Positions 22,331 to 50,690 of a DNA stretch of 64,000 nt are shown here, in pieces. Origin of the DNA: Piromyces finnis finn (lineage: Eukaryota > Fungi > Neocallimastigomycota); contig MCFH01000039.1 of the NCBI GenBank assembly GCA_002104945.1, positions 186,001 to 250,000 of the forward strand. The letters run 5' to 3'. The stretch's first letter is position 1. Every line of letters starts with the position of its first letter. A model generated the notes under the pieces. That model was given only the letters and a program-made list of their open reading frames with translations. It was not told where the DNA came from and made no database searches. The translations under genes and the position numbers were made by a program.

Positions 22331-24255
22331 TTATTGAATATCAATACTCAATATTTTAACTTCATTGTATGGTTTATCTTGTTTATCTGTTTTAACATTT
22401 TCAATTTTATGAATAACATCCATACCAGCTGTAGCACGACCGAAAATAGAGTGCTTATTATCTAACCAAGGCTATAGTATTCAATATTTATTTTTATAGA
22501 ATAAAGGAAAAATTAGTTTTTGATATAGAAATAGATATTTATAATTTTTTTTTTTTTCTTAGAATATATATACTCAAAAAATGAATATTTTTTGAATATA
22601 AATTATTTTTTTAATTGAATAAAATATACATTCAACTTACTGTTGGAACAACGGTAATAAAGAATTGACTAGCATTTGTATTTGGACCAGCATTAGCCAT
22701 ACTTACAGTGTATGGTCTATCATGCTTAATAGCTTTATGGAATTCATCTTCAAAATCGTGACCCCAGTAACTATCACCACCAGTACCATCTCCTAATGGA
22801 TCACCTGTTTGAATCATAAAACCTTTAATAACACGATGGAATATAACATTGTTGTAATATCCTTTCTTTGACAATCCAACAAAGTTTTCAACGGCCTTTG
22901 GAGCATATTCTGGGAATAATCTTATATGAATATCACCCATAGTTGTATGAATAGTTGCTTGTGAACCTAATGAATGCTTCAATGATGAAGTAGATAATGA
23001 AGCAACAGTTTGTTCTTCTCTTGATGGTTTTTCATTGAAGATATCACGACCAATACCATCTGGAGTTTCCTCACTAAATAAAGTTGATAAAATTTAATTA
23101 GTATATCCGTTATATTATTATTCATTATTTATTATAGTATTATAGTGTTAGAGATTAAAACTCTTTTATTGTTTATCATAGTATTATAGTGTTATAGTAA
23201 ACCTCTTTTTATTATTATTATTCAATAGATATATTTTAATTTGTTAAATAAAATTAAACTTACGAATCTGGTTCTCTCTTGGAAAAGAGGTAGAAACGAT
23301 TTCTTTTATATGCTGTACAGAATAATGTAGGATCTCTTAACTCACTTTCTTTAAATAATTGATTATCAGATGCTGCCATAGCCTATTTAATAAAGATTGA
23401 TTTAGTATTTTTAATTATTTTATTATGTTTTTGTTTTAATAAAGATTTTTTTTTTTTTTTTTTTTTTTTGTATAGATTTTAATAATTTATAAAGAAAAAA
23501 AAAAAAAAGATACATACCAATGTAATGATATTCTTTTTCTTTGGAGCACCTTGATAAAGACTAATATTCATAAATCTTTGAGTTTCCATTTTACCAATTA
23601 ATCTGGAAACTTTGTTTGTTTTCAAGTTACATACTTTAATACCAAATAATGTTGGATATAATAAAAAGTTACTAGAATCATCAAATACTAATAAAAGTAA
23701 TAATAATTGTTAGATCAATTTTTTTTTTTTCATTTTTATTAATACTTTTTCTATATTTTATTAAACTTTATTCTTACTAGCATTGACAGTTGAAGCTTGT
23801 CCACCATTTAGTTTCTGTATTTCTTTTTCTAAAGCTAATCTTCTACCAAATTCCATATCATCTAATTTATTACCAGCGGTACCTGCTTGTTGCATTTCAC
23901 TAACAACTTCCAAACTTTCATCATATATTCTATAAAGTTTTCCTGTTTTAAACTTGAATACTCTTAATTTTCTATCACCAAATCCAAAAGTAACAAATTT
24001 TGAATAATCTGGTGAAAATTGTAATGATGTTGGAACTGTATGATTCTAGTAGTGTTAAAAATTATAGGTAAAAAAAAAAAAAAAAAAAAAAAACAATGGA
24101 AATTATAGAGTATAAAGTATGATTAAATGGCGTGCCGATTTAAAGCATTTTTATAAATTAAATTGAATAATGAATTAGTAATGGCAAATACACAATGATA
24201 CTTTATAAATTATAATAATAATAATAATTATTATTATTATTATTATTATCATTAC

Positions 24256-24300
<45 letters not shown>

Positions 24301-26001
24301 CATTACTATTATTATTATTATTATTATCATCATTATTATGTAAATTATTATATATTATATACATATGTATATGTTTTTTTTTTAGGATTTAAAAAAAAAA
24401 AAAAAAAAAAAGAATTTTAAAAAAAATTTTTTAATATTCATTACCTTTTTAAAGGTATATAAATCAGTATCACTTTTATATGTCCAAGCAATCGTTGGTG
24501 GTTTTGGTTGATTAAATTTTTCATCTGGGTTAGGTTGCCAGTATTCAATCATACCTCCATCATCAACACTAACTACAACATCATCCACTGGATTATATTC
24601 TATAATGCTTACTGGTTGAGAATGAAGTTTATCGATAGTATATAATATACTTCCATCACCCTTTCCATCATAAACATTGATAATAGGTTTTTCACGATCT
24701 GAACTTTTTTTTTTTTTTAATAATTTTTATTTTTAAATTTATATTGTATATTATATATATATATCCATATCCATATAAAATAGAATGTTATTATAAGTAT
24801 AGAAAATTTATAGATATATCATTCAATGTAATATTCCCATGATGTATAAAGCATCTTATTGAATTATATTTTATAGGTTTAAAACTTACACAGCAACTAA
24901 TAAATTTGGTTGACCTTGTTTGTAAATCCAGGAAACACATTTTGGTGAATAATCCAATGAAATCATATTAATCATATCTTTTAAAACAAAATTAGAATTT
25001 GAATTGTATATATAATATTAATAATTATTAATCTCTAATTTGGATAGAAATTTGTTTAGGAAAAAATTATAGTTTTAAAAAGAGAATTGGGAGGAATATA
25101 ATTACCAAAGTTTTCGATATCAAAAATTTTAAATCCTTTATCGACAGCAATTGTTGCTAAATATAATCCATCACTACTAACAGATAATGAAACAATAGCA
25201 CCTAAATGAGCTCTGTAATGTTTAACAAATTCAATACCTTTTTCTGTTTTCTTCCAAAATTTAATATGACCATCAATAGATGTTGTAATAATAAAATCGG
25301 TTCTATTTAACATTAGTATCATAATATGTTTTAAAGTAAAAATTTCATTTTAATTTATAATAATAAAAAAAAGTTTTATATATATTAGTTTTTTTTAAGG
25401 TTTTATATACTACCACTACTACTAATAATAATAATAATAAAATACCTACTTTTGAACAACTTTTACGAAATTAATTACATCTCTGTGCATTAAACTACGT
25501 TCATACATATCACTTGAAGGAAGACAATCCAAATATAATTTTTCATGTTTTAAAACTAATAAAGATAGAAATTTAATTTTTATATAGAAAGAATAAAATT
25601 TTGTTATAAATTATTAATTATCATTGTTTATTATTGTTATTATCATTATTGTTGTTGTTTTTGTTGTTGTTGTTATTGTTGTTAGAATAAAAGAAAGGGA
25701 AGAAGGGGAAAAAAAAACTTTTGGAAATACCTCTTTGTTTTTTATTAGTTCCAGGAGCTTCTGGCATTGGACCAATATCATCAGAATCTACAATTTTATC
25801 ATTGATAATTGACATATTTAAAAAGTATTTAATAATAATGAAAACAAAATTGAATAGGTTTATTATTAATTTTTTTGTTTATTTAACAAAGTTCTTAAAG
25901 AAAAGTTTCACCCTATCAACGTTTTATAAAATGAATTTTTAAAATTAAAATGTACCATTTTCAGATTCTTCCTTTAATTTTCTTTTATTATTATTATCCA
26001 T
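22331..26001 (-). CDS. PPWD1: Peptidylprolyl isomerase with WD40 repeats (spliceosomal cyclophilin), multi-exon
   Basis: [34 protein letters not shown] (WD40) and cyclophilin domain [23 protein letters not shown]...[15 protein letters not shown]...[17 protein letters not shown]...[11 protein letters not shown]. Confidence 0.95.
24211..24340. repeat. (ATT)n microsatellite in a PPWD1 intron
   Basis: Direct inspection. Confidence 0.9.
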
Positions 26002-26971: not shown

Positions 26972-28379
26972 ATGACAGAGGAAAAATTAAATCCACTTAG
27001 TCTTGACGATTTTCATGCTTATTCTCAAAAGCATTTACCAAAAATGGTTTATGAATACTATGTAAATATAGATATAAATAATAATAATAATAATAATAAT
27101 TGTTGTGGGTATTATTGAAAAATTATAATGAATATTCTCTAAACTTTACTAATGGGTTATAAAAAAATAAATATATTTGAATGTATGTGTATATATTATT
27201 TGTATCATCCTAGGCTCACGGTGCTAACAACAATGAAACCGTTGAACAAAATTTAAAATCATATTTAAAGTAGGTATCATTGTTTCATGATAAAAGTATT
27301 CATATATCTATATATATGTTGTTGTTGTTGTTTCTGTTGAAACAAAGAATTAAATAATATATGTTTTTATGTTATATATATAATTATAGATATAGAATTC
27401 GTCCAAGAGTTATGCGAGATGTATCTCAAGTAGATACTTGTGTTGAAGTTTTTGGCCATGTATTACCAATTCCAGTTGGTATTGGTAAGTTGGGGAACTT
27501 TTATTTTTTTTATTAATTTGAAAAGAAAATAATAATGACAACTTAATTAAAAATAATAAATTAATATTTTATTTCTTATGTTAAAAAAAATGATAGCCCC
27601 AGTAGCAATGCAAAAAATGGCTCATTTATCTGGTGAAATTGGAATGGCAAAGGGTATATATTGATAATTTTGAAATTTGGATTTCTAAGATTTTTAATTA
27701 AATAAATAAATAAATACAATACTAAATGAATGTTATTAAAATAATTAATTTTATTATTTACTTCAATTTACAATTCAAAAAAAAAATATTTTGGATTTCT
27801 TGAAATTTCTATCCGATAAACTATAATAAAATAAAAAAAAAAAAAAAATAGGTGTTTCAATGGCTGAATCCTTAATGATTGTTAGTAGTTTTTCTACTTG
27901 TAATTTAGAAGATATTGCTCGTGAAAATCCAAATGCTCTTCTTATGTTCCAATTATACCTTCGTGATATAGAATTAACTAAAAATATGATTAAAAGTGCT
28001 GAAAAGAATGGATTTAAGGGTATTGTAGTTACTGTTGATACTCCAGAAGTCGGTAAACGTGTTTCCGATAAAAAGAATAACTTCCAATTACCAAAATCAC
28101 TCAAAATTGAAACTTTAGAAATTGATGACGACAGTGATAGCGATAGTGATAGTGACGAAGAAGATGTTGATAATGGTTCTACCATTACTAACGTTTCTAT
28201 GGCAACTCTTCATTCCAATGCTAATGATGAATCAAAAAATAATCTTATTGATGGCTTAAGTGTTGGAATGAATTCTAAATTATCTTGGGATATTATTAAG
28301 GAATTAAAGAAAATGACTAAATTACCAATTATTTTAAAGGGTATATATTGAAATAAAAATAACAACAACAACAACAACA

Positions 28380-28414
<35 letters not shown>

Positions 28415-28467
28415 TAGAATAATAATAGTAATAATAATAATTAGAATAATAATAATAATAATAATTA

Positions 28468-28511
<44 letters not shown>

Positions 28512-28540
28512 GTTGTTATTATTATTATTATTATTATTAT

Positions 28541-28581
<41 letters not shown>

Positions 28582-46982: not shown

Positions 46983-48391
46983 CTTTTTTATTTCATTATA
47001 TTTTATTTTATTATAGGATAAAAAAAAATATTAAATCATCAATATAATTATATGATTATTAAAAATAAAAATAAAAATAAAAAAAATAAATAAAACCAAA
47101 AATTAGGATAAAGAAATGAATCAAAAATTCATGGATGAAATGAAAAGAGTAACAGCTGAATGTGAAGCAATTATTCCTAATATGAAGGCCTATGAAAAGT
47201 AAGCATATTTAATTCTTAAACTATATAAAAATAAAATTTTGTATATTTTATTGCTTTGATTTGAGGATATATTTTATTCATCATATTCATTTTTTAATTT
47301 ATATTATTTCATTTTATCTATTTATTTAATTTTTAAAAATTTCAATACAAAATCATAAAAGATTGGATGAAACCGAACAAAAATTAAAAGAAACAAATAA
47401 AATCTTTGAAATTTCCAGACAAAAAGCAAAAACAGCAAAAGAAAGATTTAATCAAATTAAAGAAAAGAGGTATAATTTAAATAAATAAATAAGAAGAAGA
47501 AAAAAATTTTTTTTTTCTTTAATAATAAGTAGATTAAATGTTTCTAATACCCTTTATTTATAAATTATAAAAATTTTAATAATAAAAAGATATAATTTAT
47601 TCTATTCTGCATTTAAGCATATGGAATCAAAAATTCAATCTATTTATGAAGAACTTACAAGAACTCGTACTTCAGCTAATGGACCAGTATTACATGGTAC
47701 AGCCTATCTTAGTTTAGAAGATAGTGAAGTATGTTTTTTTTTTTTTAAAAAAAAAAAAATAAGAATTAATAGATTAATCCTATAACCATAATCCATAATC
47801 GTAATTATAATAATAATTTAAATCCATTCCCCACCTCTATTTTTTTTTTAATAATAGGAACCTTATCTAGATGGTGTTAAATATCATGCTATGCCTCCAG
47901 CCAAGACATTTCGTGATATGGATCATTTATCAGGTGGTGAAAAAACTGTGGCCGCTTTAGCATTATTATTTGCTATTCATAGGTAAGTCATAGATAATAA
48001 AAATAAATAATAATGTATGAAATGAATAATAGTATTGATACAATATAATAACAACAACAAAGGATACTAACTAATTACCATAATATAATGATTACAATAA
48101 ATGATATTATTAATTATCATAATACTAATATTTTATATATATTTCTATAGTTATCAACCATCACCTTTCTTTGTACTTGATGAAGTGGATGCCGCATTAG
48201 ATAATGCAAATGTTATGAGAGTAGCAAGTTATGTTAAAAGACATGCAAGTGAAAATTTCCAATTTGTTGTTATTTCCTTAAAGAATACATTTTATGAAAG
48301 AGCTCAAGCTTTAGTTGGTATATATCGTGATCGTGATGTGAATAGTAGTAAAGTTCTTACTCTTAAATTAGATGGCGAATATGAAAATTAA
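40953..48391 (+). CDS. SMC1: Cohesin SMC1 subunit, multi-exon
   Basis: [17 protein letters not shown]...[35 protein letters not shown], hinge [12 protein letters not shown], and [36 protein letters not shown]. Confidence 0.98.
41664..41828. repeat. 55-bp minisatellite, 3 copies, in SMC1 intron 2
   Basis: cttgacaacc recurs at 41691, 41746 and 41801. The unit includes the near-palindrome tttgaaattcaaa. Confidence 0.92.
45011..45106 (+). ncRNA. Intronic box C/D snoRNA (snR39b/SNORD2-like, guide for LSU rRNA Gm805 equivalent), possibly degenerate
   Basis: 9-bp terminal stem ggatcaaat (45011-45019) / atttgatcc (45098-45106); D box CTGA at 45091-45094; guide accatcttttgggt complementary to conserved LSU GACCCGAAAGAUGGU with one G.U pair; C'-like gcgatgt; non-canonical C box ataatga (45025-45031). 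Confidence 0.7.
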
Positions 48392-48801: not shown

Positions 48802-49774
48802 AACACTTTACTGAATAAAAAAAACTTAATTTAAATGATAGTTTATAATTATTTATTTATTTATAATTATTTTTTCTTTAATAGATATTACTATTTTTAA
48901 TTATTTTTTTCTTTAAATATAATTACATTTTACATACATATATATATATTCAATCAATATATAAAGCTATGCATTTTTATGTAGTTTTTAACATTTTTCT
49001 TTTTATTAAAATAGAGTTACTTTTTATTATTAAGTAATTCTTGTTTTAACCTTTAATTCACAGTTTAAAGGTAGTGTAATAAACCAAGAGAAATACCAAT
49101 AAAAGCTGCTCCTAATCTAACAGTAACAGTAGTAGATTAGGACTGGTCCAATTCCAGTAAAGTTCTTTGCAGCTTTTGAAAAAGCTGATTTAGATGAAGG
49201 TTTCACAAAATTTGTAAAAGAAAAAAGTAATTTAGTTAAAGAAAGCAGTACATCTAAAAAAATGTACTGATAGTGTAGTTGCTTTCATTGATACTTATAC
49301 AAAGCAATATGACCATACAACCGATGTTGCAACAAGTGAAGAATTTGGCAAAAATATGAATGATGCTGTGGTAGAATTAAAATCAATGTCTGAAGAATTA
49401 AAGAAGAATGAATGTGTTAAAGCATATGCTCAATCTAGTGATGCTAAATCTACTACTGTTAGATTAGGAACAGCCTTTATTGGTATTTCTCTTGGTTTAT
49501 TACACTAACTTTAAACTGTGAATTAAAGGTTAAAACAAAAATTACTTAATAATAAAAAGTAACTCTATTTTAATAAAAAGAAAAATGTTAAAAACTACAT
49601 AAAAATGCATAGCTTTATATATTGATTGAATATATATATATAAGTATGTAAAATGTAATTATATTTAAAAAAATAATTAAATAGTAATATCTATTAAAGA
49701 AAAAATAATTATAATAAATAAATAATTATAAACTATCATTTAAATTAAGTTTTTTATTCAGTAAATAAAGTGTT
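48802..49774. repeat. Long inverted repeat: arms 48802-49140 and 49444-49774 with a ~300-bp spacer
   Basis: The reverse complement of the right arm aligns end to end with the left arm with only small indels and substitutions, e.g. gtgtaataaaccaagagaaataccaataaa vs tttattggtatttctcttggtttattacac. Confidence 0.95.
49141..49514 (+). pseudogene. 5'-truncated fragment of a GPI-anchored surface protein gene
   Basis: Reads TGPIPVKFFAAFEKADLDEGF...STSKK [frameshift in A-run near 49260] KCTDSVVAF...AQSSDAKSTTVRLGTAFIGISLGLLH*. The C-terminus has small omega-like residues, a spacer and a hydrophobic tail. The inverted copy has TAC where this copy has TAA. Confidence 0.7.
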
Positions 49775-50009: not shown

Positions 50010-50690
50010 ATAATGATCATTAGCAAGTCGTTCTTGTTTTTATCCTGGTTGTTAAGACGTTTCCTTAGTATACATAAGACTTCTAGTTCAACCCCACAGA
50101 TGTCAGTGCTCATGAATTTCCCCCATTATGGGTTGAGTTATGATATTCAGGTAAGTATTAACGCACTTTTTAATTTACTTCTATGATATTAGCACTCGTC
50201 TAGCGGGCCTGAGTGGGTCTAAGTATACATGATTCCTTATCAAATTAGAACTTTATAAGTGGTGACTTCGGCTATGCCAAATACACAAGTAACATTCCTT
50301 AATCAATTTAAACATTAGGGGGCGGTTAACACGTGATCAATTGACTATATGAGACTTAGCATTATAATTGGAGATATCGTACAACGACATGCATCTAATG
50401 TACATGAATTAAGTGAGCGTCGAAGTTGAAGATTCAGTATGACAGACCAGGAGAGTCACAATCACCTAGCAATAGGAAAGAGCCAACGTTTCTCTAAGAA
50501 CCATCATTAGGGCTAATTCTGATTGATGAGAGAAATGGACTCAGAAGCATTAGCAAAATTCATTATTAGGGTTAGAAGTTTCACAATTACACGTCCAAAA
50601 AGCTTAAATTATGTCCGGTGTAATTAATAACATAATTTTATCTCTTGACAAGATTTAAGCATAAATTTTTAGGACCATTATTTTGAAGTT
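50010..50690 (-). ncRNA. GC-elevated ORF-less island; candidate telomerase RNA (alternatively a solo LTR or other TE relic)
   Basis: Hand counts of two 60-nt lines give 23/60 and 21/60 G+C against near-pure AT flanks. The minus strand carries CTAACCCTAA (50575-50566) 9 nt downstream of an 8-bp stem, plus several other hairpins. Confidence 0.25.

Follow-up and report, generated by a model that had tools for sequence, protein, structure and literature searches.

A probable pseudogene relic in Piromyces finnis: an inverted duplication of the 3′ end of a secreted-protein gene whose transcript could fold into a long hairpin

A foldback locus of about 1 kb in the genome of Piromyces finnis is, in our judgement, probably an inverted duplication, of fairly recent origin, of the 3′ module (the GPI-type signal and the 3′UTR) of a lineage-specific secreted-protein gene, now persisting as a pseudogene relic. 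The locus lies in the 64-kb stretch of DNA analysed here, hereafter called the window, which corresponds to positions 186001-250000 of the contig that we call C166; the contigs C156, C160, C163, C167 and C206 mentioned below are others of the same assembly. The genome-wide DNA searches made with the arms of the foldback and with the gene fragment that it contains covered 56.46 Mb in 232 contigs. In kind, the foldback is a well-known structure, the inverted duplication of a gene fragment, which is the raw material of hairpin RNAs (hpRNAs) and of young plant miRNAs.

The inverted-repeat scan of the region returned a repeat core of 188 nt, 98% complementary, in which 48938-49125 pairs with 49454-49641, and to which gapped extensions are added. 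When the longer arms were compared by pairwise MAFFT and BLAST (48807-49125 against 49454-49765), they aligned over 321 columns with 95.3% identity; the arm-to-arm BLAST alignment had 4 mismatches and 6 gap openings (E ~1e-141), and a weaker matching of the arms runs outward to 48803 and 49774. The perfect duplex runs between the arms measure 41, 34, 26, 102, 30, 32 and 16 nt. Within the 64-kb window and the ~213 kb of sequence that were scanned with it, no other complex inverted repeat reached 100 nt at 80% identity or more.

The left arm (48807-49137, minus strand) holds, in inverted orientation, the last ~23 codons of the gene and ~260 nt of 3′UTR, whilst the right arm (49441-49774, plus strand) holds the last ~22 codons (...SSDAKSTTVRLGTAFIGISLGLLH), the stop and ~265 nt of 3′UTR. 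Between them lies an asymmetric spacer of ~300 nt (49138-49440, plus strand), which translations, the alignment to the copy on C163, tblastn and a codon comparison identified as the body of a 5′-truncated fragment of the same gene. As the body of the right copy fills the spacer, the locus consists of two head-to-head truncated copies, the right one with ~120 codons plus UTR and the left one with ~23 codons plus UTR. Thus, the arrangement that had been proposed from the letters of the DNA, with the last ~20 codons and the 3′UTR inverted beside a 5′-truncated fragment, was borne out by alignment, translations and tblastn. Since only the 3′ module of the gene is covered, by arms of 0.33 kb, the foldback includes no intact coding copy. 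Outside the repeat, the segment 48764-48806 is the 3′ flank of the left copy (minus strand); the corresponding flank of the C163 copy shares homology with it, with a BLAST match reaching ~48764. At the inner junction between the left arm and the spacer (49108-49140) we also observed a secondary palindrome of 10 nt (TCCTAATCTA, 13 nt, TAGATTAGGA), which adjoins a 6-nt tandem duplication (ACAGTA x2) inside the left arm; this palindrome may be a microhomology or template-switch footprint and, taken alone, it is not statistically significant.

Upstream of the foldback, on the plus strand, there is a gene for an SMC-family ATPase, whose last coding stretch and stop occupy 48152-48391 (ORF 48101-48391) and which was recognised by a match to Pfam SMC_N (E 6.5e-18, profile positions 156-216 of 220). 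This gene, proposed as a source of read-through transcripts, ends at 48391, that is, 415 nt before the repeat; the sequence-only reading had given about 400 bp. In the 415 nt from the SMC stop to the left arm we found one AATAAA and two ATTAAA motifs, which are weak evidence in a genome of 20% GC. A search against Rfam gave no match at 44-56 kb at E up to 0.1.

Read on the plus strand, the right copy gives GPIPVKFFAAFEKADLDEGFTKFVKEKSNLVKESSTSKK in frame a (49142-49261), starting at ~49142, until an extra A in the A7 run at 49256-49262 shifts the frame; frame b starts at 49263 and reads CTDSVVAFIDTYTKQYDH...KAYAQSSDAKSTTVRLGTAFIGISLGLLH up to a stop at 49506-49508. This stop is a TAA where the left arm and the C163 copy have TAC. 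The left arm, on the minus strand, reads ...STTVTVRLGAAFIGISLGLLHYL-stop, followed by the same 3′UTR as in the right arm; its codons (49068-49137) end in ...LLHYL and its stop is at 49065-49067. By tblastn, residues 250-278 of the closest full-length relative, a protein of 278 aa, were placed on 49154-49068 of the minus strand, and residues 161-278 matched the right fragment with 34% aa identity; by eye, the right fragment can be aligned from ~residue 125 of the same paralog (CPFAVFF vs GPIPVKFF). A tblastn search of the whole window with the full-length paralog detected no remnant of the N-terminus or of the signal peptide. Moreover, a stop codon stands directly before frame a of the right copy, and a conserved Cys, kept in the C163 copy and in the 278-aa paralog, has been lost in the right fragment (ESCASRKC has become ESSTSKK-C).

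Since neither copy has its own start codon, signal peptide or promoter, the locus is best described as a pair of pseudogene fragments. In fact, coding homology is accompanied here by truncation, a frameshift, the lost Cys, a premature stop and a dN/dS near 1, the features by which pseudogenes are recognised. The dN/dS of the window fragment compared with the C163 copy was 1.22 (Nd 15.7, Sd 3.3, 95 codons), a value that comes from just 19 differences. The truncation, the frameshift, the early stop and the dN/dS of ~1.2 thus appear to match the pseudogene pattern, on a small sample, and frameshifts in homopolymer runs could be sequencing errors.

The same frames might be read in another way, with the right fragment belonging to a live gene, for example as one of the later exons of a spliced gene that escaped recognition and has the left arm in an intron or in its 5′UTR. 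Frame b is open for 81 codons and ends in an intact GPI-type tail, and the frameshift in the A7 run could be a sequencing error. On the other hand, both a signal-peptide exon and N-terminal homology are absent upstream and in the window, the stop lies directly before frame a, the conserved Cys is lost, the dN/dS is ~1.2, and a matching annotated protein was not found; we therefore consider a live gene very improbable. The exact ORFs of the fragment are absent from a collection of 5.8 billion proteins.

The search of the genome for a parent gene, which the sequence-only reading had recommended, did identify a close copy, but one that is itself probably dead. It is the one other close copy genome-wide and is found on the minus strand at C163:10692-11251, with 87.0% identity to the right copy and 80.6% to the left copy. 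The C163 copy (C163:10957-11315, minus strand) opens with a signal-peptide-like sequence, MKFSTVSLFALLAVGSTFGKY, which is followed, in another frame (+2), by the last 97 codons; this arrangement led us to consider it internally deleted in comparison with the longer members of the family and probably dead, unless its A6 run was miscalled. One more A in this run would restore an ORF with the signal peptide and ~100 aa. A 32-nt intron restoring the frame was also considered and was rejected, by inference, as implausibly short. Proteins of 53-170 aa resembling the short copies were absent from the 5.8-billion-protein collection, which was searched with a 97-aa query and by exact look-ups.

The closest full-length relative, the 278-aa paralog used above, is encoded on the same contig as the foldback, 180 kb away (C166:52902-53738; ORX45566.1 / A0A1Y1V256), and bears the UniProt name 'Secreted protein'. 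In its sequence we recognised a putative signal peptide, a body that contains Cys, a linker rich in N, G and Q, and a tail of the GPI type (...SSDAKSTTVRLGAIIMGITFGLLYYL); its putative features of secretion and GPI anchoring were read by eye from this end and from its start (MKFLTTTLLTLLSISSSFG...). The GPI-type tail that had been attributed to the duplicated gene was likewise recognised by eye. In the genome search, weaker partial matches fell on the 3′ ends of the gene of this paralog (C166:53.6 kb, 72%) and of a copy on C156 (68%), and the remaining matches were short and AT-rich. A decayed short copy was observed at C156:~1256460-1256795, on the minus strand, with a signal-peptide remnant containing an in-frame stop, internal stops, and the tail ...ISLGLLYYF-stop.

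The wider family comprises at least 15 very diverged members of ~240-300 aa, often clustered. Clusters of family members in both orientations were seen at C160:86947-118614, C156:1192436-1256606, C167:375338-383450 and C206:49258-50943, and one family match falls inside an open frame of 1305 aa with two family-like domains. No Pfam domain matched the parent family, a word search with the 278-aa paralog returned only the paralog itself, and the ESM Atlas gave unnamed chytrid-type hypothetical clusters alone, with a faint lead to DUF7729. At the paralog loci no inverted repeat was found. A separate observation concerns the subfamily, in which the body has ~33% aa identity and the 3′ module, essentially the same segment as the arms of the foldback, is the best conserved part: the GPI-type signal and the 3′UTR are 73-76% identical at the nucleotide level over ~390 nt between C166:52902-54075 and the C163 copy. 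This conservation of the 3′ module could be due to 3′-end gene conversion or to a constrained UTR.

The relative age of the inverted duplication can be judged from the three copies. In a three-way alignment the mismatches between the arms amounted to 4.95% of the columns, compared to ~18.5-18.9% between either arm and C163, so that the arms are ~4 times closer to each other; in the same way, BLAST gave 95.3% identity between the arms and 80.6-87.0% to C163. Each arm thus has the other as its nearest relative, which places the inverted duplication, or the most recent conversion of one arm by the other, long after the split from C163. The three copies also tell what was duplicated. Both the left arm and the C163 copy end in TAC-CTT-TAA (HYL-stop), and in the right arm the TAC has become TAA. 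Furthermore, the homology of the left copy to C163 extends ~43 nt past the outer end of the repeat: in the 50 columns past the repeat, the left copy and C163 are identical at 33/46 positions, and the other two pairs at 24/46 and 23/46, a background level of ~50%. Since the HYL-stop ending and the flank are common to the left copy and C163, the ancestral unit must have consisted of the body, the tail, the UTR and ~43 nt of 3′ flank. From this unit the left copy retains the tail, the UTR and the flank, and the right copy retains ~120 codons of the body, the tail and the UTR.

The differences between the arms are also relevant to the possibility that the foldback is an artefact of assembly, in which a chimeric or foldback long read was built into the contig. 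SMRTbell libraries are known to produce palindromic chimeras, the P. finnis assembly is presumably based on long reads, and some of the arm differences are indels in AT runs, typical of long-read error. However, the foldback is found at 234.8 kb on a contig of 526.8 kb, with unique genes on either side, and is a short and local repeat with an asymmetric spacer of ~300 nt. The arms differ by substitutions as well, and these differences are structured relative to C163: the left arm shares the TAC (Tyr) codon and the ~43 nt of flank with this independent copy, whereas in the right arm the codon is TAA and the flank is missing. Such a pattern is not what an artefact would give; that the arm differences speak against an artefact had already been argued from the sequence. 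The mid-contig site, the unique flanks and the arm differences that track an independent paralog allowed us to exclude an assembly artefact, which we regard as extremely improbable.

Formally, the locus could pass for a foldback or MITE-like transposable element with terminal inverted repeats of ~330 bp, since its short internal segment is enclosed by long repeats of this kind. Yet the arms are made of host-gene coding sequence and UTR, the flanks (...TTCGTTGCC and TTTTTAGTAA...), when read directly, are unrelated and show no target-site duplication (TSD), and there is one other close copy in 56 Mb, which is without an inverted repeat. Moreover, past the left end a further ~43 nt are homologous to the paralog, which means that the end of the repeat is not the end of an element. 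This, together with the lack of a TSD and of dispersed copies, excludes a transposon, and we give such an origin hardly any credence. The sequence-only reading had arrived at the same opinion from the missing TSD, and the genome-wide search, in which many dispersed copies with TSDs were not found, agrees with it.

As for the origin of the duplicated 3′ module, two routes can be envisaged. A divergent inverted pair of genes may have lost both 5′ halves through one central deletion; alternatively, a replication fold-back or template switch may have copied the tail of the gene. Later neutral drift would then account for the arm substitutions, the indels in AT runs, the frameshift, the loss of the conserved Cys and the premature stop. 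Under the pseudogene-relic reading, any transcript across the locus would still take the form of a long hairpin, which an RNAi-competent fungus would probably process with Dicer, and this processing would be a by-product and not a selected regulatory function. An inversion in place was also considered; in that case the N-terminal part should have left a remnant on the right side of the locus, and the possibility was rejected, as tblastn found none in the window.

To evaluate the hairpin itself, the 1-kb RNA was folded in silico, which gave a near-uninterrupted stem of ~330 bp with an MFE of -454 kcal/mol; the proposal that a transcript of either strand is physically able to form a hairpin of ~330 bp is thus supported by the fold. 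Searching the genome for the proteins of RNAi, we identified 3 Piwi-domain loci (best E 2.5e-98) and 3 loci with two RNase III domains each; the search for an RdRP was blank, though it had no valid control. It has been reported that four genomes of anaerobic gut fungi (AGF), one of them from a Piromyces, encode homologues of Dicer, Argonaute, QDE-3 and QIP and no clear RdRP, and siRNA knock-down has been shown in Pecoramyces (Calkins et al., PMC5796279). The earlier statement that RNAi works in these fungi is therefore in line both with the literature and with the genes found here. Because AGF appear to lack an RdRP, their endogenous dsRNA would come mainly from hairpins and antisense pairs.

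It could be supposed, then, that the foldback is a locus of the hpRNA type, in which a transcript originating by read-through from the SMC-family gene or from a cryptic promoter forms the ~330-bp stem and is processed by Dicer to siRNAs; once loaded on Argonaute, these would hit mRNAs with the same GPI tail and 3′UTR, chiefly that of the C163 copy. Several observations are consistent with this: the near-continuous stem (MFE -454 kcal/mol) with perfect duplex of up to 102 nt, the 3 Piwi and 3 paired-RNase III loci of the genome, the RNAi response of AGF, which works and has no RdRP (PMC5796279), the exact stretches of 21-37 nt that the arms share with the C163 copy, and the fact that Drosophila hpRNAs arise likewise from inverted fragments of their targets, sometimes within existing transcription units (PMC10317233). 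On the opposite side, the transcription of the locus, read-through from the SMC-family gene included, is purely inferred, the locus is single, the scans of gut metagenomes for related loci were blank, and indels and mismatches are already building up in the arms.

The potential targets also argue against a silencing function. Exact matches of the arms to other genes, of at least 17 nt, were found essentially only in the C163 copy (37, 29, 28 and 21 nt), and this sole well-matched target has an internal deletion, is out of frame and lacks an annotation. The intact close paralog ORX45566.1 has no exact match to the arms of at least 17 nt, and the at least 15 distant members of the family have exact matches of 0-17 nt, AT-rich in composition. 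The idea that the hairpin silences the parent GPI-protein family in trans thus found poor support, the exact matches of at least 21 nt being restricted to the copy on C163. For these reasons we consider an hpRNA-type locus unlikely. That the foldback is a newborn hairpin-RNA gene, transcribed as a 3′ extension of the SMC-family gene or from a cryptic promoter and directing siRNAs to transcripts with the GPI tail and 3′UTR, seems to us slightly less likely again. The hairpin-siRNA reading is drawn from the architecture of the locus and lacks a credible live target. A search of papers returned no small-RNA sequencing of P. finnis.

The foldback shares several features with Drosophila hpRNA loci, such as Dsim-hp58 and hp88 (PMC10317233, PMC10292708), which, as here, are made of an inverted protein-gene fragment with arms of a few hundred nt. 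In both cases the hairpin is complementary to a progenitor or paralog and is located beside or within another transcription unit, in a host with Dicer and Argonaute and without RdRP. What defines the Drosophila loci, however, is the presence of Dicer-2-dependent siRNAs, of a primary transcript that has been mapped and of live targets that become derepressed, whereas the foldback is known from its sequence, and its only well-matched target looks dead. An analogy between hpRNAs and the plant proto-miRNAs or young MIR genes, which are formed by inverted duplication of the target sequence, has been drawn (PMC10317233). The origin from an inverted duplication of a segment of the target gene, and the extended similarity between arms and gene when the locus is young, are common to these plant genes and to the foldback. 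Young plant MIR genes have sequenced small RNAs and validated targets, whereas the P. finnis locus is recognised by its genomic architecture. In mouse oocytes, pseudogene-derived hairpins have been shown to be precursors of endo-siRNAs by small-RNA sequencing and Dicer knockouts. They resemble the foldback in being inverted fragments of pseudogenes in a cell that lacks RdRP; the dsRNA has been shown in mouse, whereas our locus was read from the DNA of the contig.

If the foldback is only a relic, as we think probable, its main use is to show how fragments of genes get shuffled in an AT-rich fungal genome. If it were transcribed, endogenous RNAi could be studied on a natural substrate in the anaerobic gut fungi, for which, to our knowledge, there are almost no genetic tools; the locus would also provide a case from early-diverging fungi for the rule observed in flies and plants, according to which hairpin small-RNA genes originate when their target is duplicated in inverted orientation. 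Should it turn out to be a true hpRNA, no endogenous hpRNA locus would have been described before it in Neocallimastigomycota, and we would be seeing such a gene when it has only just arisen from its target.

Two further features were observed in the window. A GC-richer island is present at 50010-50690, ~240 nt to the right of the foldback. A second inverted repeat (24208-24382 / 28313-28563) consists of opposed low-complexity tracts with a 3-nt periodicity, 4 kb apart, and is not a complex duplication.
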